A stretch of 64,000 bases of DNA from Mytilus trossulus (taxonomy: Eukaryota), in the NCBI RefSeq assembly GCF_036588685.1, contig NC_086376.1, positions 30,628,001 to 30,692,000 on the forward strand, given 5' to 3'. Position 1 is the stretch's first letter. Every line of letters begins with the position of its first letter. Made by a program: the position numbers and the translations under genes. The notes beneath the pieces were generated by a model that did not search any database, had not been told where the DNA came from, and saw only the letters and a list, made by a program, of their open reading frames with translations. Positions 1-40,314 of the stretch are shown here, piece by piece.

Positions 1-147
1 CTATCAATGCAACTGTACTCCAGTTAAGGTATTGAAGGTTATACAAATACCTGCCAGTTCAGAAAAATTCATGATTAAGAAATTATTATTAAACATGTTA
101 AGTGATTAGTATTACCCCTTTATGTGTATTCTCTCTTGCAATTGTAG

Positions 148-1505
148 GGATATGCTATGGTTTCCAAATAATGGAAAGTAATGAGTCACCAAATGTGCCA
201 TTTACTTTTCTGAGGACAAGATTTAAAAGAGGTATGGAAGTTGGTTTGTTGAAACTTGACAATTGGAAGTATTAAATTGGGGGGAAAAAATCTAGCTTCT
301 GTCAGAAAAGCACACTTTTTTTCTGAACCAACACACAAGTTGGTGGGGAAGGTAAATGTATACAATGATAATAAAATTGAGAATGAAACTGGGGAATATG
401 TCAAAAAGGCAATAACCAGACCAAAGAGCAAATAAGAGTTGAAACCCACCAAAAAAGCTTTAAAGTAGTGAGAAAATCCAACACCTGCAGATGGTCCTAG
501 ACAAGGAAAATGGATGACATAATAAACACCAAGACATATAACCAAAATAAATTTGAAAAAAAGACAAACATAAGGCCATGCAATGGCTTACGAATGTATT
601 AGTGCTTGGAATTAATTTTATATATATATATATATTTATGTTGGGGAAAATTGTATTAATGTCAATTGATGTATTTCAACCTTGCTTTGATAATTTGTGA
701 TTCCAGATATTTTCCTATTTTCTGTTCTCTTTATTTTACAGCTCCAACAACTGTTGTTTACGACAATGCATGTAACCTTCATGCATACTGCCTGAACAGA
801 GACCCAGCATTTTTTCAACAAACATTATTTGTGGTGGACAATATGCACTGGGGAAATCATACCAGTTAGTATAAATAAAGACATACTAATGAATGATAAT
901 TATAACATATGATTAAAGTTGATTACAACTGTTTCTATTAATTTTATGAAATTAAGTTCCAAAGATTATTTTTTGCAGTTTGATCAGTTCATAATTCTGT
1001 TAAATGGGGAAATGTATAATTACTGTTTTATTGTTTCAAGACTTGAAATGTGTTTCATTTTATCATTACAATTTTATTGCTGTTGCATGTCATTGCTTTT
1101 TACATGAATACTTCTGATATTCTAAGGGTTTGCAAATGAAAGGAACTTATTTCTGCTTTAAAAGTACATATATGTTGTTTCAGATAATATTTATGCTATT
1201 GATACATCTCAAATTTCAATGTATTCTTTCTGATTTCTTGGAAAGTTCTAAGTTTAAATACTGAAAATATCGATGAAAGCTTTCAAATTCTATTATAAAT
1301 ATTTTATATTTCAGGTTGTTCAAAAGTGTACCATGCCAGAGTTCACCCCAGACTCCATGGAGTTAATACGCAGATGGTTGAGCAAAATAATGCAAAATTA
1401 AGAAAACTAAAGAGCCAACTTTCTTACATGAACCACAATAATTTCATGAACCACTTAAAGTTTTTTCTATGGTACTGTAACATGAATGTACTTGGTAAAT
1501 TATAA
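148..1505 (+). CDS. KDZ (Kyakuja-Dileera-Zisupton)/HMGXB3-like transposase, 3' part (last three exons; 5' part outside window)
   Basis: Exons 148-231, 742-864 and 1315-1505 (TAA) have AG/GT ends and consistent phase-1 introns. They give GICYGFQIMESNESPNVPFTFLRTRFKRAPTTVVYDNACNLHAYCLNRDPAFFQQTLFVVDNMHWGNHTSCSKVYHARVHPRLHGVNTQMVEQNNAKLRKLKSQLSYMNHNNFMNHLKFFLWYCNMNVLGKL*. The motifs G.CYGF..ESP, YDxAC, DxxHxxxH.C and N(S/T)Q..EQ.N match the KDZ transposase catalytic core as I recall it. Confidence 0.85.
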
Positions 1506-2454
1506 ACAGTCAATTAAATGCATCTCATTTTAGGAACTTTGTTTCTGTCTTTATATTCTTCTATTAACATTTTTTTAAATGGTCAATGATGAAAGGTAGT
1601 TGTAAATAGAAATATTGTTGTAACACTTATGGAAACTTTTTGATTTCAAATCTTATTCTTAATAAACGAAAATTTCCTAATCAGTAATAGTAATACTATA
1701 TCTCAGTTAGGAGAGAAAATAATTAATAAATATAAAAAGGTTGTTGTACAAAAATATTGTCATTTTATTGAACAGTAAAATGAGAACATATAAATGTTTC
1801 AAACATAACAGTATAACTTTGAGCAAAATTTGCTATAGAAAATTTCACTACATCATTGTTATACTTTTATGATTTAGATTAATAGTTGAAACAGGTAGGT
1901 TTAAAAAGAGATGACAATATTTGTTTTAACTAAAATATCTTAGAGGAAGAAAAAAATGTACTTTTAAATTGTGCATTTTATAAGGATCTACGAAAAGCAC
2001 TGTTTATTGATATATTGTGTTACAGTGATATGTTTTGATTTTGTATGATGAAGTATTATATATCTTTTTAGAAATACTGATATTTGTAATATTGTGTCCA
2101 AAACGTGCAATAACATTATCAAAAGAAAAAAAAGGTAATTGCTCTTTGTGGTGTTTTATTTTGGTATAGATATGTATATACATAGTCTGTCATAATTCTT
2201 TCAGATTGTCATATATATTTGACTCGTTTCATATATGTTTACTGTATATTTATTTTTATATTATTTCAGATGTATTTTATGTGTGTTGATACTGAAATAA
2301 ACTATTGAATCTGAATCTTGAATCTTTAATGGCTCAACCAAATAATGACATCTAAAAGCCAAAAAAACAAAAAAACATCCACTTGGTTTCCTCACATAAT
2401 GCTTCCATCGTATTACATAAATTTGATTGAATATTCTCTTGTTCAGTTTTTGAT

Positions 2455-5400
2455 ATTGTCTGTGGTCGTAAAACACAGTCTACATAGGCTGTCTGTGGTG
2501 ATTAGATACAGTCTGTAGATCTTGTATGTGGTCATGAGATACAGTCTACATATTCTATAAATGGTTGTTAGATACAGTCTGTAGATCTTGTATGTGGTCA
2601 TGAGATACAGTCTACATATTCTATAAATGGTTGTTAGATACAGTCTGTAGATCTTGTATGTGGTCCTGAGATACAGTCTACATATGCTGTAAATGGTTGT
2701 CAGATTCACTCGACATATGTTGTCTGTGGTTGTTGGGTAAAGTGTGTGTATGGTGACTGTGATTGTTAGGTGTAGTATACATATGTTGTCTCTGGTTGTT
2801 AGATACAGTCTGTATATGGTGACTGTGGTTATTATATACAGTGTGTTAATTGTTTCTGTGGTTGTTAGATGTAGTAAACATATGTTGTCTGTGATTGTTT
2901 GATACAGTGTATGTATGGTGTCTGTGGTTGTTAGATACAGTCTGTATATGGTGTCTGTGGTTGTTAGATGTAGTATACATATGATTGCTGTGGTTGTTGG
3001 ATACAGTGTATGTATGGTGTCGGTGGTTGATGGATACAGTCTGTATATGGTGTCTGTGGTTGTTAGATGCAGTGTGTGTATGGTCTCGGTGGTTAATAGA
3101 TACATTCTGTATATAGTTTCTGTGGTTATTAGATACAGTATGCAGATGGTGTCTGTGGTTGTTAGATGTAGTATACATATGTTTTCTGTGGTTGTTAGAT
3201 GCAGTCTGTATATGGTGACTGTGGTTATTAGATGCACTCTGTATATGGTGACTGTGGTTATTAGATGCACTCTGTATATGGTGACTGTGGTTATTAGATG
3301 CACTCTGTATATGGTGACTGTGGTTATTAGATGCAGTCTGTATATGGTGACTGTGGTTATTATATGCAGTCTGTATATGGTGACTGTGGTTATTAGATGC
3401 ACTCTGTATATGGTGACTGTGGTTGTTAGATACAGTGTGTGTATGGTGTCTGTGGTGGATAGATACAGTCTGTATATAGTGTCTGTGGTTATAAGATACA
3501 GTCTGTAAATGGTGTCGGTGGTTGATAGATACAGTCTGTATATGGTGTCTGTGGTTGTTAGATGCAGTGTGTGTATGGTCTCGGTGGTTGATAGATACAG
3601 TCTGTATATAGTTTCTGTGGTTATTAGATACAGTATGCAAATGGTGTCTGTGGTTGTTAGATGTAGTATACATATGTTTTCTGTGGTTGTTAGATGCAGT
3701 CTGTATATGGTGACTGCGGTTATTAGATGCACTCTGTATATGGTGACTGTGGTTGTTGGATACAGTGTGTGTATGGTGTCGGTGGTTGATGGATACAGTC
3801 TGTATATGGTGTCTGTAGTTATTAGATACAGTGTGTAAATGGTGTCTATGGTTGTTAGATGTAGTATACATATGTTGTCTGTGGTTGTTGGATACAGTGT
3901 GTGTATGGTGTCGGTGGTTGATAGATACAGTCTGTATATGGTGACTGTGGCTGTTAGATACAGTGTGTGTATGGTGTCTGTGGTTGATGGATACAGTCTG
4001 TATATAGTGTCTGTGGTTATTAGATACTTTGTGTAAATGGTGTCTGTGGTTGTTAGATGTAGTATACATATGTTGTCTGTGGTTGTTGGATGCAGTCTGT
4101 ATATGGTGACTGTGGTTATTATATGCAGTCTGTATATGGTGACTGTGGTTATTAGATGCACTCTGTATATGGTGACTGTGGTTGTTAGATACAGTGTGTG
4201 TATGGTGTCTGTGGTGGATAGATACAGTCTGTATATAGTGTCTGTGGTTATAAGATACAGTCTGTAAATGGTGTCTGTGGTTGTTAGATACAGTCTGTAT
4301 ATGGTGTCTGTGGTTGTTAGATACAGTGTGTGTATGGTGTCTGTTGTTGATGGATACAGTCTGTATATAGTGTCTGTGGTTATTAGATACTTTGTGTAAA
4401 TGGTGTCTGTGGTTGTTAGATGTAGTATACATATGTTTTCTGTGGTTGTTAGATGCAGTCTGTATATGGTGACTGCGGTTATTAGATGCACTCTGTATAT
4501 GGTGACTGTGGTTGTTGGATACAGTGTGTGTATGGTGTCGGTGGTTGATGGATACAGTCTGTATATGGTGTCTGTAGTTATTAGATACAGTGTGTAAATG
4601 GTGTCTATGGTTGTTAGATGTAGTATACATATGTTGTCTGTGGTTGTTGGATACAGTGTGTGTATGGTGTCGGTGGTTGATAGATACAGTCTGTATATGG
4701 TGACTGTGGCTGTTAGATACAGTGTGTGTATGGTGTCTGTGGTTGATGGATACAGTCTGTATATAGTGTCTGTGGTTATTAGATACTTTGTGTAAATGGT
4801 GTCTGTGGTTGTTAGATGTAGTATACATATGTTGTCTGTGGTTGTTGGATGCAGTCTGTATATGGTGACTGTGGTTATTATATGCAGTCTGTATATGGTG
4901 ACTGTGGTTATTATATGCAGTCTGTATATGGTGACTGTGGCTGTTAGATACAGTGTGTGTATGGTGTCTGTGGTTGATGGATACAGTCTATATATAGTGT
5001 CTGTGGTTATTAGATACTTTGTGTAAATGGTGTCTGTGGTTGTTAGATGTAGTATACATATGTTGTCTGTGGTTGTTGGATGCAGTCTGTATATGGTGAC
5101 TGTGGTTATTATATGCAGTCTGTATATGGTGACTGTGGTTGTTAGATACAGTGTGTGTATGGTGTCTGTGGTTGATAGATACAGTCTATATATAGTGTAT
5201 GTGGTTATTAGATACTGTGTGTAAATGGTGTCTGTGGTTGTTAGATGTAGTATACATTTGTTGTCTGTGGTTGTTGGATACAGTCTGTATATGGTGTCCA
5301 GGGTTGTTAGATGTAGTATACATATGGAGTCTTTGATTGTTCACACAGTATGTATATGGTTTCTGATATTGTTAAATACAGTCTACTTATGGTGTCTGTG

Positions 5401-5730
5401 GTACTTAGATGTCGTATATATATGTTATCTTTGGTTGTTTAATACAGTCGATATATTATGGCTGTGGTTGTTATGTACAGTTTGTATATGTTGTCTCTTA
5501 TTGTTATATGCAGTATCTACAGGGTGTCTGTAATTGTAAGGTACATTCTGGTATTCATTATCTATGGTTGTTAGATGCAGTTTGTATGTTTTGTCTGTGG
5601 TTAATAGGTATAGTCTATATTTATTAGGTACAGTCTGTATATTATGTCTGCGGCTGCTAGATGCAGTCTGTATAAGGTGTTTATGGTTGTTAGGTACAGT
5701 CTGTATTTGGTGTCTTGGGTTGTTAGATGC
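2455..5730 (+). repeat. 33-bp minisatellite array A (~100 units), consensus TCTGTGGTTGTTAGATACAGTCTGTATATGGTG
   Basis: Direct tandem periodicity; 11-aa periodic ORFs on both strands. Higher-order 759-bp (23-unit) duplication: ORFs 3839..4036 and 4598..4795 are identical. Degenerate edges, with remnant units resuming at ~5930-6030. Confidence 0.97.
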
Positions 5731-5734
5731 AGAC

Positions 5735-5905
5735 GTGTAATTCGGAGTCCAGTAGGACGTCCAGTATCACTGAACTAGTATACATTTTTGTTTAGGGGCC
5801 AGCTGAGGGACACCACCGGGTGCAGGAGTTCTTCGCTGCAGTGAAGACCCATCGATGGCCTTCTGCTATTTTCTCTTTGACACATTCCATATTTCCATCC
5901 TCAAT
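5735..5905 (+). mobile_element. SINE-like interspersed repeat fragment inserted in the decayed edge of array A
   Basis: GACGTCCAGTATCACTGAACTAGTATACATTTTTGTTTAGGGGCCAGCTGA...GAAGACCCAT is present again as a reverse complement at ~31600-31910. Confidence 0.7.
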
Positions 5906-6227
5906 TCCATGTCATAAGTTGTCTTTAGCTGTTTTTTGCAGTCTGTATATAGTGTCTGTGGCTGTTGCTGTTATATATACTGTTTATACGTATTACAAAA
6001 ACAATCTGTGGTATGATTGTTTATTAGATAACTCTTCTCAAAAGACAAAATGAGTGAAGTGCGACAACCTTTAATTTGGCAATCGCACAACGGGTACAGA
6101 GGAGGGTGCATGAACGTAATGATAAGTGTGTGTTTTAAATTAGTTAGTGACAGGGATAAAGATTAAACGGTTAGCAATTGAACATTATTTGTTTTTCATA
6201 TGTCTATTATTTACGATCACTTCGATA

Positions 6228-6932
6228 CGACGGGCACATGACGTTTGCGCTTTCTACCTGTAATACGATATGACATTTGCGCTTTAAAATTTCATTCATC
6301 TGTATTAAATTGACCGAAGATTTGCGCTTTTTGCTTACAGTCGTCTACCCGTTAATGCATTCTACTTCTAGTATCGGTCGTTAGTTACAGTCTTAAACAC
6401 GGAGTTTAAAGTTACAGATACTAGTAAAGAAATAAATGTATATGTCATGATGGATTTTTATATCGTTTGGATCAAACCTTCAAATGTGGATACCTTTAAT
6501 AGAAAATAACCGTGAAAAATTAAAATGCTAGAATTAAAACGGACATTGGACTACTAATATTACAAGCAAGAAAGTTAACCTAATCACTCACAATGTGATG
6601 ACAGATAAAATGAGCGTTTAAAATCCTTCCATGCCCACTGTAATGAACAGTTATACTCGACTCATCTTTTATGTCTATCTTTTTAAGGAGTATCATTGCA
6701 CAACAGTCTGTGTATTACATCAGGAACATATATATTGTTCCCAGATTACATTTAGACTGGTTATGTTAATAAGCAAGCACCGCAGTCAAGAATTAAGAAA
6801 GAGAAACTTGATTAATAATTTTTATTTGAAACGTGGGTCCTTGCATGTGCTATGAAATGTGATAAGAACGTAAGTGTCCAAAAATAAAAGCGCAAATGTC
6901 CTATGAAAAAGCGCCAACGTCCCGCGCCATAT
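6228..6932. mobile_element. Possible MITE bounded by inverted GACATTTGCGCTTT motifs
   Basis: GACGTTTGCGCTTT, GACATTTGCGCTTT and GATTTGCGCTTT at 6240-6332. Inverted AAAGCGCAAATGTC and AAAGCGCCAACGTC at 6887-6921. No TSD recognised. Confidence 0.45.
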
Positions 6933-7679: not shown

Positions 7680-10600
7680 TAGACCCTATAACAATACCGT
7701 GCAGAGACAACATCATATTATTACAAAGTCATGTATGATCAAGTATAGAGAACTTGTACCTAGGAACCATACCATGCATAGACATCTTGCCTCTAGAAAC
7801 CATGATATGCATAGACACCGTCAATCTAGTAACAATACCATGCATTTATAACTTTAATCTATGAACAATACCATGCATATATTACTTGAATCTATGAACA
7901 ATACCATGCATTTATAACTTGAATCCATGAACAATACCCTGCATTTATAACTGGAATCTATGAACAATACCATGCATTTATAAATTGCATCGTGGAACCA
8001 TACCATGTACAGATAAACCTGTATCTTGGAACCACACCATGCATTGATAACCTGTATCTAGGAACCATGTCATACATTGATAACCTACATCTGGGAACCA
8101 TATCATACATTGATAGCTTGTATCTAGGAACCCTGTCATGCATTGATAACCTGTATCTAGGAACCATGTCATACATTGATAACCTGCATCTAGGAACCAT
8201 GTCATACATTGATAACCTGTATCTAGGAACCATGTCATACATTGATAACCTGTATCTAGGAACCATATCATGCATTGATAACCTGTATCTAGGAACCATG
8301 TCATACATTGATAACTTGTATCTAGGAACCATATCATGCATTGATAACCTGTATCTAGGAACCATGTCATGCATTGATAACCTGTATCTAGGAACCATGT
8401 TATACATTGATAACCTGTATCTAGGAACCATATCATACATTGATAGCTTGTATCTAGGAACCATGTCATTCATTGATAGCTTGTATCTAGGAACCATATC
8501 ATGCATTGATAACCTGTATCTAGGAACCATGTCATGCATTGATAACCTGTATCTAGGAACCATGTTATACATTGATAACCTGTATCTAGGAACCATATCA
8601 TACATTGATAGCTTGTATCTAGGAACCATGTCATACATTGATAGCTTGTATCTAGGAACCATATCATGCATTGATAACCTGAATCTAGGAACCATGTCAT
8701 GCATTGATAACCTGTATCTAGGAACCATGTTATACATTGATAACCTGTATCTAGGAACCATATCATGCATTGATAACCTATATCTAGGAACCATGTCATA
8801 CATTGATAACCTGGATCTAGGAACCATGTTATACATTGATAACCTGTATCTAGGAACCATATCATACATTGATAGCTTGTATCTAGGAACCCTGTCATGC
8901 ATTGATAACCTGAATCTAGGAACCATGTCATGCATTGATAACCTGTATCTAGGAACCATGTCATACATTGATAACCTGTATCTAGGAACCATATCATACA
9001 TTGATAGCTTGTATCTAGGAACCATGTCATACATTGATAGCTTGTATCTAGGAACCATATCATGCATTGATAACCTGTATCTAGGAACCATGTCATACAT
9101 TGATAACCTGTATCTAGGAACCATGTTATACATTGATAACCTGCATCTAGGAACCATGTCATGCATTGATAACTTGTATCTAGGAACCATGTTATACATT
9201 GATAACCTGCATCTAGGAACCATATCATACATTGATAACCTGTATCTAGGAACCATATCATACATTGATAACCTGAATCTAGGAACCATGTTATACATTG
9301 ATAACCTGTATCTAGGAACCATATCATGCATTGATAACCTGTATCTAGGAACCATGTCATACATTAATAACCTGTATCTAGGAACCATGTCATACATTGA
9401 TAACCTGTATCTAGGAACCATATCATGCATTGATAACCTGTATCTAGGAACCATGTCATACATTGATAACCTGTATCTAGGAACCATGTTATACATTGAT
9501 AACCTGCATCTAGGAACCATGTCATGCATTGATAACTTGTATCTAGGAACCATGTTATACATTGATAACCTGCATCTGGGAACCATATCATACATTGATA
9601 ACTTGTATCTAGGAACCCTGTCATGCATTGATAACCTATATCTAGGAACCATGTCATACATTGATAACCTGTATCTAGGAACCATGTCATACATTGATAA
9701 CCTGTATCTAGGAACCATGTCATACATTGATAACCTGTATCTAGGAACCATATCATGCATTGATAACTTGTATCTAGGAACCATGTCATACATTGATAAC
9801 CTGTATCTAGGAACCATGTCATACATTGATAACCTGTATCTAGGAACCATATCATACATTGATAGCTTGTATCTAGGAACCATGTCATACATTGATAGCT
9901 TGTATCTAGGAACCATATCATGCATTGATAACCTGTATCTAGGAACCATGTCATACATTGATAACCTGTATCTAGGAACCATGTTATACATTGATAACCT
10001 GCATCTAGGAACCATGTCATGCATTGATAACTTGTATCTAGGAACCATGTTATACATTGATAACCTGCATCTAGGAACCATATCATACATTGATAACCTG
10101 TATCTAGGAACCATATCATACATTGATAACCTGAATCTAGGAACCATGTTATACATTGATAACCTGTATCTAGGAACCATATCATGCATTGATAACCTGT
10201 ATCTAGGAACCATGTCATACATTAATAACCTGTATCTAGGAACCATGTCATACATTGATAACCTGTATCTAGGAACCATATCATGCATTGATAACCTGTA
10301 TCTAGGAACCATGTCATACATTGATAACCTGTATCTAGGAACCATGTTATACATTGATAACCTGCATCTAGGAACCATGTCATGCATTGATAACTTGTAT
10401 CTAGGAACCATGTTATACATTGATAACCTGCATCTGGGAACCATATCATACATTGATAACTTGTATCTAGGAACCCTGTCATGCATTGATAACCTGAATC
10501 TAGGAACCATGTCATACATTGATAACCTGTATCTAGGAACCATGTCATACATTGATAACCTGTATCTAGGAACCATGTCATACATTGATAACCTGTATCT

Positions 10601-10782
10601 AGGAACCATATCATGCATTGATAACTTGTATCTAGGAACCATGTCATACATTGATAACCTGTATCTAGGAACCATGTCATACATTGATAGCTTGTATCTA
10701 GGAACCATGTCATACATTGATAACCTGTATCTAGGAACCATATCATGCATTGATAACTTGTATCTAGGAACCATATCATGCA
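7680..10782 (-). repeat. 33-bp minisatellite array B (~90 units), + strand unit CTGTATCTAGGAACCATGTCATACATTGATAAC
   Basis: Tandem periodicity. Higher-order 858-bp (26-unit) duplication: the rare ATTAATAA variant occurs at ~9363 and ~10221. Left edge is degenerate; right edge is sharp. Confidence 0.97.
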
Positions 10783-25400: not shown

Positions 25401-28400
25401 TGCAGCCTGGACAAAATCATTGGCAATCCTTTGCCCAAAGCCTTTCATGTGGTCAGGACCTGAAATTACATTTATCATCAAAATATAAATACACATGTAA
25501 AAAAGGAAACTCCATGTACATTTTAAAATAAACTGTTTTGCTTATAAAAAAGATACCTTATCTTCTCAGTTGAAATTGGTAAAAATTCTATTTCTATCAA
25601 TAGCAATATTTCATACTTCAAATACTTGTGTCTTCAATAAAAATGAAACCATATCTGTGCTTACCACAAAACTCAACTGTTTTTGAATCTTTGTTAATCA
25701 TTATAGATACAATAGTATCCCCTCTGTCCAACATCTTATTCACCTGCAAGTAAAAAGAAATTTATCAAACAAACTTGAATACTAGTCAAAACAGATCAAG
25801 CGTACAGAATATCATATATACATAAAAAGACATTGATAAAAATTCTATCTATAAATTATTTTTTTAATGTAAGCCTTTGTTAAAGAACACCATTTAGAAA
25901 AAAAATCTGAGTTTCAATGTAAAAATCTAATAAAGATACTGAAACATAAAAAGAAATGACACCTATTAAATGTTTGGTAATGAAAGTTGTTGCAAAGAAT
26001 ATGAGTTATTAAAGCTACTACTGCAATTGTAATTTGATGTTGAACTTACAACTGCCTTCACCTTTTCCCAATCTTCCTCACTTTTTCTGTCCTATAAATA
26101 TATAATAGAAATTATTTACATATTGGCACAGTAATTATGCACTTCCATTTTTTGTTGTTGCAAAAACTATAACAACAAATGGGAATCAAAGATAATGAAA
26201 CATGTAACACCTGTTAATATTGTAAAACAAGATGATATGTATATACATATAATGAATTATCGATATAGAGTCTTGATATATTATCTGTGCTCATAGATAA
26301 AGGTTTATGTTGTTCTAAGAAACTATCTATTTGCCTAGTATTTGCATTATCTATGGTTCTTAGGTATAGTCTGTATGAGTTGTCTTTGGTTCTATATACA
26401 ATTTTTATGTCTTGTCTGTGGTTCTTAGGTAAAGTCTATATGTAATGTTTGTGGTTCTTATATACAGTTTATATGTCTTGTCTGTGGTTCTTAGGTACAG
26501 TTTATATGTCTTGTCTGTGGTTCTTAGGTACAGTTTATATGTAATGTTTGTGGTTCTTTTATAGTTTATATGTATTGTTTGTGGTTCTTATGTACAGTTT
26601 ATATGTCTTGTCTGTGGTTCTTAGGTACAGTTTATAAGTCTTGTCTGTGGTTCTTAGGTACAGTTTATATGTCTTGTCTGTGGTTCTTACATACAGTTTA
26701 TATGTATTGTTTGTGGTTCTTAGGTACAGTTTATATGTCTTGTCTGTGGTTCTTAGGTACAGTTTATATGTAATGTTTGTGGTTCTTTTATAGTTTATAT
26801 GTCTTGTCTGTGGTTCTTAGGTAGAGTCTTTATGTCTGTGGTTCTAAGGTAGAGTCTTTATGTCTGTGGTTCTTAGGTACAGTCTATATCTATTGTCTGT
26901 GGTTCTTAGGTATAGTCTTTATGTCTTGCCTGTGGTTCTTACATACAGTTTATATGTCTTGTTTGTGGTTCTTAGGTACAGTTTATATGTATTGTTTGTG
27001 GTTCTTAGGTACAGCTTATATGTCTTGTTTGTGGTTCTTAGGTACAGTTTATATGTCTTGTTTGTGGTTCTTAGGTACAGTTTATATGTATTGTTTGTGG
27101 TTCTTAGGTACAGTTTATAAGTCTTGTCTGTGGTTCTTAGGTACAGTTTATGTTTCTGGTCTGTGGTTCTTAGGTACAGTTTATATGTCTTGTCTGTGGT
27201 TCTTACATACAGTTTATATGTCTTGTCTGTGGTTCTTACATACAGTTTATATGTATTGTTTGTGGTTCTTAGGTACAGTTTATATGTCTTGTCTGTGGTT
27301 CTTAGGTACAGTTTATATGTATTGTTTGTGGTTCTTTTATAGTTTATATGTATTGTTTGTGGTTCTTATATACAGTTTATAAGTCTTGTCTGTGGACCTT
27401 AAGTAGAGTCATTATGTCTGTGGTTCTTAGGTAGAGTCTTTATGTCTGTGGTTCTTAGGTACAGTCTATATCTATTGTCTGTGGTTCTTAGGTATAGTCT
27501 TTATGTCTTGCCTGTGGTTCTTACATACAGTTTATATGTATTGTTTGTGGTTCTTATATACAGTTTATATGTCTTGTCTGTGGTTCTTAGGTACAGCTTA
27601 TATGTCTTGTCTGTGGTTCTTATATACAGTTTATATGTAATGTTTGTGGTTCTTTTATAGTTTATATGTCTTGTCTGTGGTTCTTAGGTAGAGTCTTTAT
27701 GTCTGTGGTTCTTAGGTAGTCTATATCTATTGTCTGTGGTTCTTAGGTATAGTCTTTATGTCTTGCCTGTGGTTCTTATATACAGTTTATATGTCTTGTC
27801 TGTGGTTCTTATGTACAGTTTATATGTCTTGTCTGCGGTTCTTTTATACAGTTTATATGTCTTGTCTGTGGTTCTAAGGTAGAGTCTTTATGTTTGTGGT
27901 TCTTATGTACAGTCTATATCTATTGTCTGTGGTTCTTAGGTACAGTTTATATGTCTTGTCTGTGGTTCTTATATACAGTTTATATGTATTGTTTGTGGTT
28001 CTTATATACAGTTTATATGTCTTGTCTGTGGTTCTTAGGTACAGCTTATATGTCTTGTCTGTGGTTCTTATATACAGTTTATATGTCTTGTCTGTGGTTC
28101 TTAGGTACAGCTTATATGTCTTGTCTGTGGTTCTTATATACAGTTTATATGTCTTGTCTGTGGTTCTTATATACAGTTTATATGTCTTGTCTGTGGTTCT
28201 TAGGTACAGCTTATATGTCTTGTCTGTGGTTCTTATATACAGTTTATATGTCTTGTCTGTGGTTCTTAGGTACAGCTTATATGTCTTGTTTGTGGTTCTT
28301 ATATACAGTTTATATGTCTTGTCTGCGGTTCTTTTATACAGTTTATATGTCTTGTCTGTGGTTCTAAGGTAGAGTCTTTATGTTTGTGGTTCTTATGTAC

Positions 28401-31158
28401 AGTCTATATCTATTGTCTGTGGTTCTTAGGTACAGTTTATATGTCTTGTCTGTGGTTCTTATATACAGTTTATATGTATTGTTTGTGGTTCTTATATACA
28501 GTTTATATGTCTTGTCTGTGGTTCTTAGGTACAGCTTATATGTATTGTTTGTGGTTCTTATATACAGTTTATATGTCTTGTCTGCGGTTCTTTTATACAG
28601 TTTATATGTCTTGTCTATGGTTCTTAGGTACAGCTTATATGTCTTGTCTGTGGTTCTTATATACAGTTTATATGTATTGTTTGTGGTTCTTATGTACAGT
28701 TTATATGTCTTGTCTGTGGTTCTTAGGTACAGCTTATATGTCTTGTCTGTGGTTCTTATATACAGTTTATATGTATTGTTTGTGGTTCTTATGTACAGTT
28801 TATATGTCTTGTCTGTGGTTCTTATGTACAGTTTATATGTCTTGTCTGTGGTTCTTATATACAGTTTATATGTATTGTTTGTGGTTCTTATATACAGTTT
28901 ATATGTCTTGTCTGTGGTTCTTAGGTACAGTTTATATGTCTTGTCTGTGGTTCTTATATACAGTTTATATGTATTGTTTGTGGTTCTTATATACAGTTTA
29001 TATGTCTTGTTTGTGGTTCTTATATACAGTTTATATGTCTTGTTTGTGGTTCTTATATACAGTTTATATGTCTTGTCTGTGGTTCTTAGGTACAGTTTAT
29101 ATGTCTTGTCTGTGGTTCTTAGGTACAGTTTATATGTATTGTTTGTGGTTCTTTTATAGTTTATATGTATTGTTTGTGGTTCTTATATACAGTTTATATG
29201 TATTGTTTGTGGTTCTTATATACAGTTTATATGTCTTGTTTGTGGTTCTTATATACAGTTTATATGTCTTGTCTGTGGTTCTTTTATAGTTTATATGTAT
29301 TGTTTGTGGTTCTTTTATAGTTTATATGTATTGTTTGTGGTTCTTATATACAGTTTATATGTATTGTTTGTGGTTCTTATATACAGTTTATATGTCTTGT
29401 TTGTGGTTCTTATATACAGTTTATATGTCTTGTCTGTGGTTCTTAGGTACAGCTTATATGTCTTGTCTGTGGTTCTTACATACAGTTTATATGTATTGTT
29501 TGTGGTTCTTATATACAGTTTATATGTCTTGTCTGTGGTTCTTTTATAGTTTATATGTATTGTTTGTGGTTCTTATATACAGTTTATATGTATTGTTTGT
29601 GGTTCTTATATACAGTTTATATGTCTTGTTTGTGGTTCTTATATACAGTTTATATGTCTTGTCTGTGGTTCTTAGGTACAGCTTATATGTCTTGTCTGTG
29701 GTTCTTACATACAGTTTATATGTCTTGTTTGTGGTTCTTATATACAGTTTATATGTATTGTTTGTGGTTCTTTTATAGTTTATATGTATTGTTTGTGGTT
29801 CTTATATACAGTTTATATGTATTGTTTGTGGTTCTTATATACAGTTTATATGTCTTGTTTGTGGTTCTTATATACAGTTTATATGTCTTGTCTGTGGTTC
29901 TTAGGTACAGCTTATATGTCTTGTCTGTGGTTCTTACATACAGTTTATATGTATTGTTTGTGGTTCTTATATACAGTTTATATGTCTTGTCTGTGGTTCT
30001 TATGTACAGTTTATGTTTCTGGTCTGTGGTTCTTAGGTACAGTTTATATGTCTTGTCTGTGGTTCTTAGGTACAGCTTATATGTCTTGTCTGTGGTTCTT
30101 ATGTACAGTTTATATGTATTGTTTGTGGTTCTTATATACAGTTTATATGTCTTGTCTGTGGTTCTTATGTACAGTTTATGTTTCTGGTCTGTGGTTCTTA
30201 GGTACAGTTTATATGTATTGTTTGTGGTTCTTATATACAGTTTATATGTCTTGTCTGTGGTTCTTATGTACAGTTTATGTTTCTGGTCTGTGGTTCTTAG
30301 GTACAGTTTATATGTAATGTTTGTGGTTCTTTTATAGTTTATATGTCTTGTCTGTGGTTCTTAGGTAGAGTCTTTATGTCTGTGGTTCTTAGGTAGTCTA
30401 TATCTATTGTCTGTGGTTCTTAGGTATAGTCTTTATGTCTTGCCTGTGGTTCTTATATACAGTTTATATGTCTTGTCTGTGGTTCTTATGTACAGTTTAT
30501 ATGTCTTGTCTGCGTTCTTTTATACAGTTTATATGTCTTGTCTGTGGTTCTAAGGTAGAGTCTTTATGTTTGTGGTTCTTATTTACAGTCTATATCTATT
30601 GTCTGTGGTTCTTATGTACAGTTTATATGTCTTATCTGTGGTTCTTATGTACAGTTTATATGTCTTGTCTGTGGTTCTTATGATAGTCTTTATGTCTTGT
30701 CTGTGGTTCTTAGGTACAGTCTATATGTATTGTAAATCCCGGCATCCCGAAAGCGGAAATGAAGAATTCCCGGATCCCGAAAGGATCAATCCGGAAATCC
30801 CGAGCTTATTAACAGCCGATACCGGAGTCCTGATAAAGGTCCTATCCCCCCTCATTTGACGCAAATGGTAGCCGAAAATGACTGAAGTAAACAGACATTA
30901 CTACCCTCAAGAATACAAAAAGGTGAAGTAACTTTGGTATTTTCATCTTTTAATCAGTGGTAGATCCAAAATTGTTTATGAAGCGGCCCATAGACTGCCA
31001 CGAAGGCGGGACAGCTCCAGTCAGGCTGAAGTAATCCCTTGTCTAATCATCAATTGTTTCCAACAAAAAAGGGGGACATTTTTTTGCTTTAAAGTTTAAT
31101 GCAAAGGTTATATTTGCAATATGATGGTTCTATTTTAATGTGTTACCCTTTTCGGCAT
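13414..31158 (-). CDS. ~500-aa protein: NRF1/ewg/P3A2-like DNA-binding region + acidic linker + Ulp1/SENP (peptidase C48) domain + PHD finger
   Basis: Phase-consistent exons in transcript order: 31147-31158, 26050-26091, 25665-25743, 25364-25459, 24709-24786, 23936-23948, 22251-22351, 21414-21478, 21011-21054, 20255-20319, 19775-19795, 18925-18984, 18240-18376, 17904-18032, 17136-17204, 16023-16111, 15310-15439, 14605-14704, 14302-14363, 13414-13524 (1503 nt, no internal stop). C48 motifs: SLKKNSWVTDKIMDAYLELV, SHWDLLII, FLNPMG, QQDGSSCGIYCLMFADKYL. PHD: CPCC..VKCITCCKFFHKKSHCVG..FTCALD. The 3' ten exons are secure; the 78-nt and 13-nt exons are less so. Confidence 0.82.
15310..18376 (-). CDS. 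Ulp1/SENP-like cysteine protease (C48) catalytic exons of the gene above
   Basis: W-x-T-D-x-I-M-D-A-Y-L motif, catalytic His in HWDLL (exon 17136-17204), oxyanion Gln and catalytic Cys in QQDGSSCG (exon 15310-15439). Confidence 0.9.
16484..17070. mobile_element. Non-autonomous element with long terminal hairpin (Crypton-like), intronic
   Basis: ~140-bp near-perfect palindrome at 16484-16625 (TTCAGGTCTCAGA..ATATACTGTGACATTCCTGGCTTAG / CTAAGCCAGGAATGTCACAGTATAT..TCTGAGACCTGAA) with a GCCGAGGCGAAGG loop. Second inverted pair ATTACGGATTAC (16628) / GTAATCCGTAAT (17056). Confidence 0.6.
20500..20892 (-). mobile_element. HINE/pearl-like (Helentron-associated) non-autonomous element, decayed
   Basis: Two diverged internal repeats (AACTCTAGAAC...CTTGAT...GTTTCATAACATTT), GACA microsatellite and terminal hairpin TATGCCCC..GGGCATA. 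Confidence 0.5.
23355..23535 (+). mobile_element. Abundant SINE-like repeat (..TTGTCTCATTGGCAATCATACCACATCTTCT family)
   Basis: The same family recurs in either orientation at ~34490-34890, 40545-40810, 44620-44820, 48170-48450, 49730-49810, 51270-51580 and 52395-52510. Confidence 0.8.
24349..24564. mobile_element. TA-flanked MITE (TACTGT...CAGTA), Tc1/mariner-like
   Basis: TACTGTAAAAAC...GTTTCTGCAGTA termini with internal CCACGAA-type repeats. Relatives at 42746-42940 and 61824-62033. Confidence 0.5.
26340..30732 (+). repeat. 33-bp minisatellite array C (~130 units), consensus TCTGTGGTTCTTAGGTACAGTTTATATGTCTTG, inside intron 1 of the Ulp1 gene
   Basis: Tandem periodicity with recurrent 31-bp and shorter deletion variants. 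Higher-order blocks, e.g. 229-bp and ~490-bp offsets between near-identical ORFs. Confidence 0.97.
30735..30855 (-). mobile_element. Truncated MITE (ATGAGGGGG.. termini family)
   Basis: Reverse complement of the 5' half of the element at 58228-58427 (ATGAGGGGGGATAGGACCTTTA...CGGGATTTC). Confidence 0.75.
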
Positions 31159-31159
31159 C

Positions 31160-31340
31160 TTCTAGACTGTCTCAGTAGTAAAGTAAAGTTAAAACGAAAG
31201 TAAACATAAACTTCGGAACCTCTCTTCTTTGTCTAAAAAATCCGAGTTTGATTAAGAGCCAATGGTAAGATAGATGACAAAAATGATTGGTAAATTAACC
31301 AATCAGAGCGTGGTCCATATCGTGGTTTTTAAATGGTAAG
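31160..31340. promoter_or_regulatory. Probable bidirectional CCAAT-box promoter of the Ulp1 gene
   Basis: Three CCAAT boxes (AGCCAATG ~31257, TGATTGG ~31284, AACCAATCAG ~31297) and CGAAAGTAAA ~31196 lie just upstream of the - strand ATG at 31158. A + strand donor AAATG/GTAAGA is at 31336. Confidence 0.55.
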
Positions 31341-31559
31341 AACCACAACTATTATACCTCCCGTTTTTGTAAAAACAACAGCACTCGAGGTCTGACAGTA
31401 TTTTACCAAGAAATGCACAAAATATTCAAAAAGAAGGCCTAGAAAATTTAAATATTGGTATGCACACATACTCCCCTGTCAGCACAGACAATTATATTTT
31501 TGTAAACGCGCCAAACTCGTTTCTAATATTTATAATAGAACTGAAAAGAAAATTGAAAT

Positions 31560-32015
31560 GGAAATGGGGAATGTATCAAAGAGATAACAACATGACCAAA
31601 GAGCAGATAACAGCCATAGGTCACCAATGGGTCTTCATTGCAACGAGAAAATCCCGAAACATGAGACTTGGGTGGATCCTGAGTCATATAAAGGGGTTCC
31701 TAACCCAGGACAAATTTGGGGGGGGGGGGGGGGGGGTGTGTTAAACTACATGTCCCCATTCAAATGCATTGATCGTCCAGTAAAGAAAGGGGGGGTTCCA
31801 ACATGTCCAACCCTCAGCCCCCTGGATCCGTGCCTGTGAGGCATGCTTTAGCTTGCCATTAAACAAAAATGTATACTAGTTGAGTGATAATGGACGTCAT
31901 ACTAAACTTTTCAATACAAAGAAAAAGAAACTAAAATAAAAATCATACAAAGGTCACAAAGGCCATAACTTCTGGCTCCTGAATAAGAAAAAGTGCAAAA
32001 TGCAGTGGGGATAAA
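31560..32015 (-). mobile_element. SINE-like repeat interrupted by a GGATCC-type MITE (~31666-31838)
   Basis: Flanks match 5735-5905 in reverse. The insert has inverted ends GGTGGATCC...GGATCCGTGCCTG and poly-G tracts. Confidence 0.65.
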
Positions 32016-32244
32016 AGCCTTTACTGTAAATCCTGAAATTACAATTATATAAATCATCTCGCATCTTTGTGCATTTCTTGAAATTGGTCATATTAATAAA
32101 TGCATGCAATATTTTCAGAAAATTTCAATATATAGGCTTTTTTAAAAAAAGTCAATCTTGTGCATGATTATCAATGATTATACTCGCACAATTAACACAT
32201 GTGGTTCTCAAAACTCAAAGGTGTCTATGCTATTTATGACAACT

Positions 32245-32725
32245 TTTATACCCCCGCTTTCAAAAAAGGGGGGTATACTGTTTTACCTCTGTCTGTCAGT
32301 CCGTCCGTCCGTCAGTCAGTCAGTCCGTCCCATGAATATTTTTCTTCGCATTTTTCGCAGGAACTACAATACAAGGATTTCTGAAATTTGGTTTCAGGGT
32401 TTATCTAAGTCATTTATACCATGTGATGCGTTTTCAGATTGATCACTTGTCAACTTCCTGTTAACCGAACACTTGTATGATTTTACACATGATACTGAGC
32501 CAAGTTGAAAATTTTCGTCACATTTTTCTCAGGAACTACAATACAAGGATTTCTTTAATTTTGTTTTAGGATTTATATAAGTCAGCTATACCGTGTGATG
32601 CGTTTTCAGATTCATCACTCGACAACTTCCTGTTTACCGAACACTTGCATATTTTTACACTATTTATATTATCCACTTGCGGCGGGGGTATCATCAGTGA
32701 GCAGTAGCTCGCAGTTTCACTTGTT
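32245..32725 (+). mobile_element. HINE/DINE-1/pearl-like Helentron-associated element
   Basis: TT-flanked. Subterminal IR ATACCCCCGC / GCGGGGGTAT, (CCGT/CAGT)n microsatellite, two ~175-bp internal tandem repeats, 3' hairpin AGTGAGC..GCTCGC. Confidence 0.8.
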
Positions 32726-33304
32726 AATAAAGTATAAATTTACAAAATATGTTTAGAACTATATGATTTTTATGTTTTTAAGCATAGATATAGTAGGTCA
32801 GGATCTGCCAACTCTCACTGACTGACTGAGCACATAAATTCAACACTAGTTTTTTGGTGTTGCTTAGTGTTTTGTTTTGTTTTGTTTTTCTTTTCTGCAT
32901 CTTATGTTTTGCCTTGGCATTGTCAGTTTCTCTTTCATTGCCTTTGGTTTTTTTTGTTATGTTAAATAACAAGTCACATATAACATGTATAATCATGATA
33001 ATTAAGGTCCTTTTTAATTTTTAGGGATTTTAAATTTTTTATTTAAAGTTAGGGATTTTATTCATAAAAGGGGGGATTTTCCAGTACGTATACTATTAAT
33101 AATGCTTTGAGCAATTTTAATGAAACTTGGTGAATTATTTTTGTATAACATAAACATGATAATTTTCCTTTTAATTTTAAAAAAAAATCTGATTTATGTC
33201 ATTGTACTATCATGACTTGGGATTAGGATAGTCTCAAGAATGCTTTCACAAATTTTTATGAAACTTTGGTGAATTGTTTTTATATCTTGACATAAACACC
33301 CTTT

Positions 33305-33880
33305 TTATTATTATGACCCAAAGTGGAGGGGGCATAATGTTTAACACTTTATCGTTTGTCCGTCTGTCCCAAAGTTGTTTTTTGTTCTCTTACATTACTT
33401 TAGTTTGCCTCAAACAAATTCAATTAAACTTTTACAAAAGCTTGTTATCACAATACTCAGATCAAGTTTGAATTTTGGTGATGTCAGTGTTACTGTACTA
33501 GAGTATCAGAGTTATGCCCCTTTAGAAATGGGGAAAATATGCTGAATTTTTGGTTTCCTGTTTTCTAAACTTTAGTTTGTCTCAACCAAATGTTATGAAA
33601 TCAATACACAATGCTTATAACCACAAAATACAGATTAAGTTTGAATTTTGGTAGTGTCTCTTTTACTAAATTCTATAGTTATGTTCTTTAAAAATGGAAA
33701 AAATTGTTTCAGCCTTCTAACTTAAGTTTCCCTCAACCAAATTTTATTAAACTTTAAAACAATACTTTTTATCACAATTTTAATCAGATCAATTTCAAAT
33801 TTTTGTAGTAAAACTTTTACCGTTCTTCAGTTATGTTCCTTTAAAACTTTGAATAATATGCAAGCTGGAGTATCATTCCC
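33305..33880 (+). mobile_element. Second, decayed HINE-like element
   Basis: 5' hairpin, GTCC microsatellite remnant, three diverged ~165-bp internal repeats. Confidence 0.55.
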
Positions 33881-35954
33881 TATTTATCATGTATATTTTT
33901 TTATAAGATGCAGAGTTAAGGAACTTTAGTTGTTGCAAAGTTATTTAAAATTTGTCCATTTTCAAAATCTTTGAAAGGTTTTAGAAATGTATTTGTTAAA
34001 AAAATCGCAGCCTTAAACTTATAGTCACTTGAGAGATCTATAAATTGAGCCAAATTATATACATGTTTTATGTCAATGAATACCACTGTTTGTGCATGTT
34101 TTTGTTTTTTTGGAGGGCGGGGGTCTTATTTGCGCAGTGCTCATAGTTTTTTAGTCGATCAATAAAATTCATTTAAAGCTTACAGACCAGCTATAAGGGC
34201 AAGAAGCTTATCAAGCACTCATGGTTTAGATTTTTATTAAACACACATTAATATACATATAAATGTACATTAAACAGAAAAAATATTGATGCAAGATGTC
34301 ATTCAACTTTTACTCTTTTATGTATAGGACAAGAACTATAGAAGGTACAGAGAAATAATATACAGCAGAAATGATAGGCAATGTAAAATTTGCAGAAGCC
34401 AACTAAACCTAAATGGTAAGGCACCTTTTAATTTTAAAAAGTTATTGAACTTGAAAGATGATTACTAGTATCATGATTACTATAAAAACTCAAAGATGTG
34501 GTATATTAAATATGAAAACTATCACGGCTTTGAGAAAGAAATTGTAGGCCTGTTATGACCTTCAATAATGAGAAAATCAATACCCTATACTATAGTCAAA
34601 GTATAAAAGACCTAAAGATGAAACATTGAAACAATTCAAACTGTAAAACTAATCATGCTAATTGCCTAGTTTATAACAAAATAAATTACAAAAAATAAAT
34701 ATGACCGGTATGAAACAACAACAACAACAACCACTAAATTTTAGTGTCAGACTAAACTGATAAAAGCTACAGGCTCTGAACTTTGGACAGGCACAATAGG
34801 AATATGGCAAGGTTATATAAAAATAAGATGTGGTATGATTACCAATAAGACAACTCTCCACCAGACAACCAATGATGTAAATTTCCTGCAAACATGGACT
34901 TGACTACTGTAAATCAACTAATTTTTCGTGAATACTTTATCTTGCATTTTATACTTTTTAGTCTACATCGCAGTTATTTATTTTTCTCGAGTTCAAGTTT
35001 ACTTAATGTATTTTAATAAGGAAAGATACACATGAAAAACATTTATTGCTGTTTCTCTCTCCATTTATAACATTTTATTTGCTTTTTTTGTGTATTTATA
35101 GGTGATCAGACATCTCAGTTTTCATGATTACTGAAGAGGAAACTTAAAGTTGAAATTTATTTACATAGTGCATAATTGGAATAATTTGAAATGGAATGTG
35201 TGCTTTCCTGCAAAAAAGAAATAGGAAATTTCAACATGTGATAATGACCATATAAAACAAAATGGAGTTCTATCATAGATACCCGAAAACACTATTGCAT
35301 AAAAGCAACAACATATCTTAATCAAAAGAAAGGAGAATGCAGAATAAATACTATTTTGTTGTTGAAAAAAGGATAACCAGTTTTATCCACTCATTTACAT
35401 CGCTCCCTCATATCAAATATACAGAAGAAGATCATTGAAGAACAATTTGCAAAAATGATTTCTCTTAGAATTGAAGGGAATTGTTTAGTGAATGGAATAA
35501 TGTATTCACTGAATTCTTACATAGTGGATTGAATAACTGTACACAAGCTGAAACAGAAGAAATTCTAATTTAAAATAACACGAAAAGTGTTTATTTTATT
35601 ATTTAATCTGCAAATATATAAATATTTTTTTTAGAACACCACAAATGATATAATGACATTCAAATTGGTTGCTTATTATTGTATCGCATTGAAACAATTA
35701 CAAAGAAAACAGAAGCATTTGCTCCAAAAAAATTATAAATCAAAGTTAAATTTATATAAAAAGTATAAACAATACCTAGATCTAAACAGTCAGACTGTAT
35801 TATTTTCAATGTCATTAAAATTTTGAGTCAAACATTTATTATTAAATTTTTAAATATCATTTGCATCAATTCTACAGTCTTTTAATAATTATATTCATAC
35901 TGTTAGTATACATGGTGTAGTGAAGAAATGTTTAACAAGTAAAAATAAGGAAAA

Positions 35955-36390
35955 ACATTTCCTTAAGGGAAATTTGATGTTCAGAAATTTCCTTGGAGGA
36001 AATTTGAAGAACAATGATTTCCTCAGAGGAAATTTGTTGTCTTGAATTTTCCTCCAAGGAAAAGTGTTTGTCAAAAATTTCCTCACAGGAAAAAAAATTT
36101 CCTCAAAGGAAAATGTGAAGCTACAAATTTCCTCACAGGAAAAAGTATTTCCTCAAAGGAAAATTTGAAGCTGCAAATTTCCTCAAAGGAAAATTTGAAG
36201 CTGCAAATTTCCTCAAAGGAAAAAGAATTTCCTCTAAGGAAAAAGAATTTCCTCTAAGGAAATAATTATGCAGCAAATTCCCTAAGGGAAATCTTTTTCC
36301 CTTGAGGAAAAAACAATTTCCCTTGAGGAAAAATCTTTTTCCTTCAGGGAAATTTGATTTCCCTTGAGGAAAAGTACTTTTCCTCTGAGG
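35955..36390. repeat. Cluster of palindromic TTTCCTCAAAGGAAA-type repeats (subterminal-repeat-like)
   Basis: About 20 copies of TTTCC(N5)GGAAA at ~20-31 bp spacing, switching polarity (TTTCCTCAAAGGAAA to TTTCCCTTGAGGAAA) near 36280. Confidence 0.9.
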
Positions 36391-36558
36391 AATTTGTTGA
36401 AAAAAGGGGCATAACTTTTTCAACAGTGGTGCTAGAGCCAAATTTTTTTAGGACAAATATCAGGGAACCAATACCAACCAAGTTATCAACTTTGTTTTGA
36501 CTTAAGTCTAAAAATTAAGGTGACAACTTTTGCACTCAGCGGAATTGCAAACTTGTCC

Positions 36559-40200: not shown

Positions 40201-40314
40201 GGATCTGACCGGCTAGCGCTACTTCTTGGGTGTTAAACTTATTACTTTTTTGTGTTAAAATGTTTCGTCTTTTCGTTTGTTGTTACTTTTGTTGATTTTA
40301 TTCATTGAAGTAAA

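Follow-up and report, generated by a model that had tools for sequence, protein, structure and literature searches.

A 49-kb insertion in the Mytilus trossulus genome with features of a giant KDZ transposon and a second, protease-like gene

In the genome of the mussel Mytilus trossulus, a 49,131-bp unit was inserted as a single piece into one copy of a ~20-kb repeat to which it is unrelated. The unit contains two genes, one for a KDZ-type transposase and one that is protease-like, and four minisatellite arrays. This unit, here referred to as the giant element, extends over C4:30,610,230-30,659,360, which corresponds to positions -17770 to 31360 of the window, i.e., the whole 64,000-nucleotide stretch of DNA that was analyzed (negative positions lie to the left of its first letter). 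Positions 1 to 31360 of the window probably represent the right-hand two thirds (31.4 kb, no strand assigned) of a cut-and-paste DNA transposon of the Kyakuja-Dileera-Zisupton (KDZ) superfamily, with the left 17.8 kb located outside the window, in loci L012 and L014. Its contents are, in order, the left terminal inverted repeat (TIR), array 0, the KDZ/CxC4 gene on the plus strand, arrays 1 and 2, the protease-like gene on the minus strand, array 3, and the right TIR. A preliminary description of the window had proposed that such parts form one mobile unit, and the TIRs, the target site duplication (TSD), and the empty sites described below, which enclose both genes and all four local arrays, bear this out. 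Both ends of the element, for which it had suggested a size of more than 36 kb, had been misplaced.

Results

The ends of the giant element are 220-bp TIRs that match at 208 of 220 positions (95%), the left one at L012:2230-2442 and the right one, in inverted orientation, at positions 31141 to 31360 (minus strand). The termini read GAGG...CCTC. They are flanked on both sides by a perfect 7-bp TSD, CCGTTTT, with its left copy at L012:2223-2229 and its right copy at 31361 to 31367 (no strand assigned); the left side lacks the fifth T that a TSD of 8 bp would require. The empty site, uninterrupted and with CCGTTTT present once, is preserved in at least five further copies of the ~20-kb host repeat. 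In these copies, the counterparts of window positions -20189 and 31361 lie 27 bp apart, compared with 51.5 kb at the C4 locus. The 51.5-kb gap consists of two clean insertions of 2,375 bp and 49,131 bp, each with its own TIRs and TSD; the smaller one is a separate ~2.4-kb element that has TIRs of 516 bp and a TSD of 9 bp and lies 34 bp to the left of the giant element. The possibility that 27 bp had been deleted at the site was considered and ruled out, as the site resolves into these two insertions. Since the interrupted host copy is still 96 to 98% identical to its sibling copies, the insertion of the giant element is evolutionarily recent.

The host repeat is itself bounded by TIRs. Its right arm runs from 31361 to 36568 (plus strand) and has at least 25 copies at 95 to 98% identity over 4.6 to 5.2 kb; its left end is at window position -30556, and the left arm is likewise 95 to 98% identical to other copies. 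At the C4 locus, the repeat is collinear with two copies, A and B, that extend from left arm to right arm without the 51.5 kb, and other copies of the repeat lack the KDZ and protease-like genes. The right TIR of the host repeat (35945 to 36568, plus strand; 122 matches, 40 of them full length at 87 to 97%) contains palindromic repeats of 20 to 50 bp at 36017 to 36392. The host repeat ends sharply at 36568, and a farnesoic-acid-O-methyltransferase-type (FAMeT) exon of a host gene starts right there (36569 to 37071, plus strand; Pfam PF12248, Methyltransf_FA, E=4.9e-22).

The giant element has one transposase-like gene, and no other was found inside it. This gene lies on the plus strand, has 10 exons over ~10 kb, and is intact, with its final three exons in the window and the preceding seven upstream in L014; the spliced plus-strand gene anticipated by the preliminary description is thereby confirmed. 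By tblastn, exon 8 (147 to 233, plus strand) is 88% identical to residues 743 to 768 of P0002 and 93% identical to P0165. Exon 9 (732 to 866, plus strand), carrying the YDNACNLH and D..H...H motifs, shows 67% and 88% identity to the same two proteins, and exon 10 (1311 to 1505, plus strand), which follows an acceptor AG at 1310 and contains a VEQ motif and the stop codon, shows 80% and 86%. The reading frame is open over all 10 exons, and the exon junctions tile on P0002 and P0165. Over its entire length, the gene is collinear with residues 11 to 867 of an 874-amino-acid Pecten maximus protein, and it retains the D, D..H, and E motifs.

Domain searches for both genes were run exon by exon. Pfam KDZ (PF18758) gave no match in exon-size scans of the KDZ exons of the window. 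The last three exons align at 53 to 64% to residues 646 to 773 of P0008 and at 59 to 62% to residues 746 to 870 of P0167, and in these aligned stretches, which include the counterpart of exon 9, Pfam calls KDZ in both proteins (E=7.6e-07 for P0008 and E=3.3e-10 for P0167). A CxC4 zinc cluster scored below the cut-off in the KDZ exons of the window (E=0.0068, 16.7 bits) and above it in the aligned region of the homologues P0067 and P0167. The KDZ domain of the predicted transposase is thus assigned indirectly, through the aligned homologues. While a word search with the whole P0002 protein returned only P0002 itself, one with its C-terminal region returned 16 full-length homologues. Pfam found no C48 peptidase domain in the KDZ exons, and none appeared for the 16 homologues either, as judged from a precomputed Pfam list and from new scans of seven of them or related matches.

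Convergent to the KDZ gene is a multi-exon gene on the minus strand whose frame translations contain Ulp1/C48-like catalytic motifs. A putative catalytic His exon (17133 to 17204, minus strand; G-S-H-W-D-L-L-V) and an F-L-N-P-M-G exon with Asn where the catalytic Asp would be expected (16022 to 16111, minus strand) were recognized in the frame translation by motif, with no Pfam match to either. The putative catalytic Cys exon (15325 to 15429, minus strand; Q-Q-D-G-S-S-C-G) was identified by motif and by the Atlas language-model search, in which 28 of 30 matches belonged to the PF02902 set (score 0.94); its paralogues in the genome, one at 84% and ~18 at 38 to 59%, are spread over multiple loci. 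Profile and word searches for C48, comprising exon-size Pfam scans, PDB phmmer, a six-frame PF02902 scan of the genome, and a word search, gave no match in the gene. The C48 assignment of the gene, for which the preliminary description had proposed an Ulp1 protease, is therefore weak, with only the motifs and the Atlas result in its favor.

Two further domains that had been proposed for this gene were not recovered. For a PHD finger, the last exon (13417 to 13524, minus strand), which ends in a stop codon, has a Cys/His-rich, PHD-like pattern in its frame translation, C-x2-C-x4-H-x4-C followed by C-x2-D; this departs from C4HC3, in that a PHD finger is expected to have H-x2-C and C-x2-C, and Pfam gave no PHD match. 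For an Nrf1-type DNA-binding domain, a six-frame genome scan with PF10491 (Nrf1_DNA-bind) gave no match in the window at E<=10, while it returned two NRF1-type genes and weaker matches on C1 and weak matches on C12 and C5; an Atlas search with window positions 25305 to 25541 returned nothing. A candidate N-terminal exon of the gene is without a paralogue.

The four arrays share a 33-bp unit and together make up 17.4 kb, or ~35%, of the giant element. Array 0 (about -15600 to -8877, strand not given) lies upstream of the window and is larger than each of the three arrays within it, which were delineated by TRF: array 1 (2457 to 5726, plus strand, ~99 units), array 2 (7751 to 10787, minus strand), which is in the opposite orientation and has higher-order periods of 66 and 165 bp, and array 3 (26350 to 30733, plus strand, 135 units), just inside the right TIR. 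The three arrays originally noted are thus real, but they are not exclusive to the interval, given the fourth array and the presence of related 33-bp arrays on at least 12 other chromosomes, which rules out a minisatellite family private to the element. Elsewhere, a 33-bp array lies within a dispersed repeat of more than 10 kb, where it adjoins 79-bp and 52-bp arrays; this repeat has no unique end sequence in common with the giant element. The array units were also considered as copies of the TIR tip, and the resulting 12 of 16 matches were no better than those of shuffles.

No second full copy of the giant element was found in this assembly, and the KDZ exon, the KDZ gene DNA, and the DNA of the protease-like gene are unique. 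The sole exception is a 3.6-kb fragment of the protease-like region on C3, introns included, at 87 to 92% identity (91% for the last exon), which is consistent with an older second copy. Among the matches listed, no KDZ and Ulp1-like paralogues lie close together elsewhere, and the convergent co-occurrence at several loci that had been predicted is not seen for this single-copy element. Because there is no second full copy, the case for mobility rests on one insertion, and because both genes are single copy in the genome, we infer rather than observe which enzyme moved the unit.

Discussion

The data presented here show that the giant element entered the host repeat in one event. The reading as a KDZ transposon is supported because a 7-bp TSD with TIRs fits what KDZ elements make (7 to 8 bp): Kyakuja elements generate 7-bp TSDs (PMC12730594), and Zisupton and Dileera elements generate 8-bp TSDs (PMC12730594; PMC11343200). 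According to this reading, the KDZ protein would recognize the TIRs and move the unit, the protease-like gene and the arrays would be accessory cargo, and the element would be autonomous and low copy, represented in the assembly by one copy and the older 3.6-kb fragment on C3. It is of note that the link between the KDZ protein and the TIRs is one that we infer, that a single insertion is at hand, and that the TSD is 7 bp as opposed to the 8 bp of Zisupton.

The origin of the ends bears on a different account, in which the 49-kb unit is a macrotransposon that was moved, through two ends of an abundant nonautonomous family, by some other transposase, with both genes as passengers and the KDZ gene possibly domesticated. 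The full 220-bp TIR occurs in the genome only as the pair of the giant element; its outer ~100 bp, however, are 80 to 86% similar to an abundant repeat with at least 530 candidates, and for this reason the ends might belong to another family. That both genes are single copy and that the relatives of the KDZ gene are low copy (72% for P0165 and 48% for Pecten), as would be the case for a conserved host gene, point the same way. However, neither TIR amounts to a whole small element, the inner 120 bp being confined to this pair, and in the related loci that were examined, the 100-bp TIR-like unit is internal to other repeats and is not a clean terminus. With a TSD length that suits KDZ and the KDZ gene as the sole transposase candidate within the unit, we regard such cargo transport as unlikely.

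The remaining accounts conflict with the structure of the locus itself. If there were no mobile unit and the two genes were merely neighboring host genes amid unrelated repeats, one of them a domesticated KDZ transposase, their single-copy state would be expected, as would the result of a search for TIRs immediately flanking the KDZ gene, where only array units were found (in the stretches from array 0 to exon 1 and from the stop codon to array 1). This is very improbable, since a single 49-kb insertion is defined by its TIRs and TSD and by the empty site that at least five paralogous copies of the host repeat display, and a KDZ gene inside a recently inserted unit with such boundaries argues against domestication. 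A misjoin that placed a 49-kb block into this region, which is indeed full of arrays and nested repeats, is scarcely credible, as it would not yield matching 220-bp inverted ends and a perfect 7-bp duplication of host sequence. Finally, the preliminary description had placed the right end in the palindromic repeats at 36300 to 36558 and had predicted an inverted copy with a TSD on the left. The repeat to which the palindromes belong does abut the host exon, and an inverted partner of 35840 to 36573 does exist at window positions -30562 to -29826 (identity 90% in total and 97% within the terminal 160 bp). This pair, however, constitutes the TIRs of the ~20-kb host repeat, a TSD was not observed at its ends, and copies A and B span the two arms without the inserted DNA, so that a >36-kb element with the palindromes as its terminus is almost certainly not what the locus contains.

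To our knowledge, KDZ transposons are well characterized in fungi and a few fish and hardly at all in invertebrates. The transposase of fish Zisupton elements reportedly carries a SUMO-protease domain, and vertebrate HMGXB3 is a domesticated relative. In the literature searched, the sole mention of KDZ in bivalves was a count of Pfam domains in oysters. Like Zisupton, the mussel element has TIRs and a multi-exon gene for a KDZ transposase with a zinc cluster of the CxC type (CxC4 in the homologues), and a CxC4-plus-KDZ architecture is regarded as Zisupton-like (PMC11343200). It differs from Zisupton in its 7-bp TSD and its 49-kb size and in that the protease-like motifs are found in a separate convergent gene and not in the transposase or its 16 full-length homologues. 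It shares the 7-bp TSD with Kyakuja, which, unlike the mussel element with its 220-bp TIRs starting with GAGG, has 5'-CA..TG-3' ends and no TIRs. The second gene is also reminiscent of Ulp1-carrying Mutator-like elements, having many exons, Ulp1-like motifs, and a putative Cys/His finger at its C-terminal end; here, in contrast, the transposase is of the KDZ type and separately encoded, and searches of the minus-strand gene revealed neither a MULE nor a SWIM part.

In Cryptococcus, the "gigantic" multi-gene elements KDZ1, KDZ2, and KDZ3 have 236-bp TIRs, are multicopy, and have been observed to transpose (PMC11343200). The giant element resembles them in its multi-gene content, long TIRs, and TSD, but it is roughly five times their size (49 kb compared with 10.9 kb for KDZ1, which has an 8-bp TSD [PMC11343200]) and would represent one past insertion. 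[quoted passage not shown] 2014). The mussel element differs in having a protease-like accessory gene, an animal host, a several-fold larger size, and a minisatellite content of about one third. It is conceivable, though quite doubtful, that it is an autonomous, recently mobile animal KDZ transposon whose separate Ulp1-like protease acts on its SUMO-dependent silencing and whose four alternating arrays are functional, for example, as multimerized binding sites for the transposase or chromatin proteins. If so, it would be an animal counterpart of the fungal arrangement, although an anti-silencing role of the protease-like gene is speculation.

For a putative 49-kb animal KDZ element, the locus defines both ends precisely, together with a TSD and an empty site, and it shows that insertion in one piece is possible for a cut-and-paste unit this large, long introns and 17 kb of minisatellite included. 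It may also add, beside the fungal TET/JBP carriers, a second example of a KDZ element with a separate enzyme gene, and the idea of counter-silencing enzymes in transposons thus becomes testable in an animal. For annotation, it cautions that single-copy, intron-rich "genes" of mussels can be transposon genes.

Some smaller observations concern repeats at the locus. Variable left ends had suggested that the host repeat might be a LINE or a Helitron; they result from comparing arms, and the repeat was left unclassified. Left of the right arm of copy A, a 10-kb stretch (L034) contained no open reading frame of 120 or more amino acids. In addition, a ~600-bp MITE that is missing from the C3 fragment is nested in an intron of the protease-like gene (16474 to 17079, no strand assigned); it has inverted ends of ~150 bp and at least 40 copies at 90 to 94% identity.

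RESULTS

The locus examined, comprising the window (C4:30628001-30692000) and 40 kb upstream of it (pieces L013, L015, L012, and L014) in a 1.30-Gb, AT-rich bivalve genome whose closest named proteins are those of Mytilus, Pecten, and oysters, contains a 49-kb unit that is bounded by terminal inverted repeats (TIRs) and that inserted as one piece, duplicating 7 bp. Self-comparison of 78 kb of the locus revealed two inverted pairs, one linking window positions 35840-36573 with -30562 to -29826 (negative positions lie to the left of the window) and the other linking 31141-31360 with -17770 to -17558. Of these, the first represents the TIRs of a ~20-kb repeat family, here referred to as the host repeat, which occupies L013:9444 onward (window -30556 to -20189) and 31361-36568. 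Copies A (C13) and B (C17) of this family are collinear with window -29013 to -20189, then 27 bp, and then 31361-36568; as both are uninterrupted, the C4 copy is broken by 51.5 kb. Reading of the junctions showed that this interruption consists of two clean insertions of 2,375 bp and 49,131 bp. The larger one, referred to as the giant element (-17770 to 31360; C4:30610230-30659360), has 220-bp TIRs that start with GAGGTATAAT and are identical at 208 of 220 positions. It is bordered on either side by CCGTTTT, a 7-bp target site duplication (TSD), and the empty site, with a single CCGTTTT, is seen in five uninterrupted host-repeat copies. Since the C4 host-repeat copy is 96 to 98% identical to its siblings, the insertion of the giant element is evolutionarily recent. 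The giant element is single copy in this genome, and, small MITEs and one 3.6-kb C3 fragment aside, the DNA of both of its gene regions is unique. Our first reading, of two adjacent single-copy genes amid unrelated repeats, was overturned by the TIR pairs and the 51.5-kb interruption of the host repeat.

A preliminary description had placed the right terminus of the element at the palindromic repeats at 36300-36558. These repeats are genuine, as is the Methyltransf_FA exon adjoining them, and they belong instead to a repeat with many copies that are 95 to 98% identical. At least 25 long host-repeat copies show this level of identity, and the upstream copy of the first inverted pair matches the left arms of family members at 95 to 98% over >2 kb. 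The host-repeat TIRs are ~730 bp long and packed with palindromic 20- to 50-bp repeats, and inverted end pairs lie 15.7 to 19 kb apart on C9, C13, and C26. The 10 kb adjoining the right arm of copy A on its left (L034) held no open reading frame (ORF) of ≥120 amino acids, and no TSD was seen for the host repeat. The 2,375-bp element (L015:9812 to L012:2186; window -20188 to -17814) inserted 34 bp to the left of the target site of the giant element and is followed by 43 bp of host repeat. It has 516-bp TIRs that are 94% identical and a TSD, TCTTTTTAG, whose length of 9 bp suggests a nonautonomous, Mutator-like element. The FAMeT-type exon (window 36569-37071; Methyltransf_FA model positions 20 to 136) starts exactly at the end of the host repeat. 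At the opposite host-repeat end, 67 kb upstream, a candidate splice acceptor was noticed together with some 9 nt of possible exon sequence; if these belong to the exon, the host repeat may have split it. Downstream of the exon lies a 76-bp tandem array with 16 copies at 90% (window 38956-40204).

From left to right, the giant element consists of the left TIR, 2 kb of unique DNA, array 0 (-), the KDZ gene (+), array 1 (+), 2 kb of unique DNA, array 2 (-), the minus-strand gene with its stop codon at 13417, array 3 (+), 0.4 kb of unique DNA, and the right TIR. About 35% of the element (17.4 kb) is made up of the 33-bp arrays. The three previously noted are genuine, and a fourth (array 0) was found upstream of the window; their supposed confinement to this interval did not hold, as at least 12 further chromosomes carry the 33-bp repeat. 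A composite dispersed repeat of >10 kb (L022 to L027, e.g., C10:48893301-48903300), whose interchromosomal copies are 88 to 98% identical, contains a 79-bp array, a 2.6-kb 52/104/156-bp array, and 2.5 kb of 33-bp units to which the arrays of the giant element are related. The outer ~100 bp of the giant-element TIR also resembles a dispersed repeat (L038 to L043), which at several loci forms direct copies spaced about 280 bp from each other, their flanks being conserved.

The spliced KDZ gene is genuine, but the window covers just the final three of its exons (147-233, 732-866, and 1311-1505; plus strand; tblastn to P0002); the other seven are in L014. Among 1.8 billion representatives searched, the best full-length match for its 250-amino-acid exon was P0002 (XP_033731140), an 874-amino-acid protein from Pecten maximus. 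Ten pieces with tiling ends are collinear with P0002 residues 11 to 867 by tblastn, with 33 to 88% identity per exon; the exon boundaries carry GT-AG sites, and an ATG is located at about window -8514. P0165, an uninterrupted 631-amino-acid ORF from a public read assembly, is 72% identical to the gene over seven exons and may derive from a spliced mRNA or be an intron-free relative in another species. Homologues pass the Pfam cutoffs for KDZ and CxC4 in the aligned regions; direct Pfam analysis of the locus returned CxC4 only, at a score below the cutoff (E = 0.0068). A second copy of the KDZ exon was not found in the genome, the next matches having 29 to 31% identity. One intron (L014:6871-7442) holds a ~570-bp interspersed repeat with at least 39 copies at 76 to 81%.

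The frames of the minus-strand gene contain H-W, N-P-M-G, and Q-Q-D-G-S-S-C-G motifs, whose succession is that expected of a clan-CE/C48 protease, and the Cys exon groups with PF02902 clusters in an Atlas search; no exon-level profile or sequence search gave a match for this gene. The Nrf1-type DNA-binding domain previously assigned to it was not found, and its proposed PHD finger is an atypical, PHD-like pattern in the last exon without a Pfam match. One intron contains a ~600-bp MITE with ~150-bp inverted ends (window 16474-17079; at least 40 copies at 90 to 94%). The 3.6-kb C3 fragment (L019 and L020; C3:58839721-58843226) is 87 to 92% identical to window 13406-18653, introns included, and lacks this MITE and 13621-15311. 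The TIR of the giant element was not found within 60 kb of the fragment, which is probably a leftover of an older copy of the element.

DISCUSSION

We propose that the intact internal KDZ gene encodes the transposase that would move the giant element, with the protease-like gene and the arrays as its presumed accessories. The main alternative is that the ends derive from another, abundant family and that both genes are passengers, and it draws on the outermost ~100 bp of the TIR (window 31259-31360), which is 80 to 86% similar to the dispersed repeat mentioned above, for which there are at least 530 candidate loci. Judged from transposase homology, TIRs, and TSD length, the giant element is assigned to the KDZ superfamily. 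Elements of this superfamily can be large and multigenic (PMC11343200), and those of fungi carry separate TET/JBP genes that are thought to counter silencing (PMC12730594). The TSD is 7 bp long in Kyakuja and 8 bp long in Zisupton and Dileera (PMC12730594; PMC11343200). The giant element thus differs from Zisupton in its 7-bp TSD and from Kyakuja, which lacks TIRs, in having them; on the features testable here, it matches neither. The giant element is several times the size of described KDZ elements, and its protease-like function resides in a separate convergent gene. Elsewhere in the same genome, four open 266-amino-acid KDZ frames with equal scores (C1:98907914, C3:35866599, C9:43419603, and C1:29587862), each 31% identical to the KDZ gene, probably represent a multicopy KDZ family.
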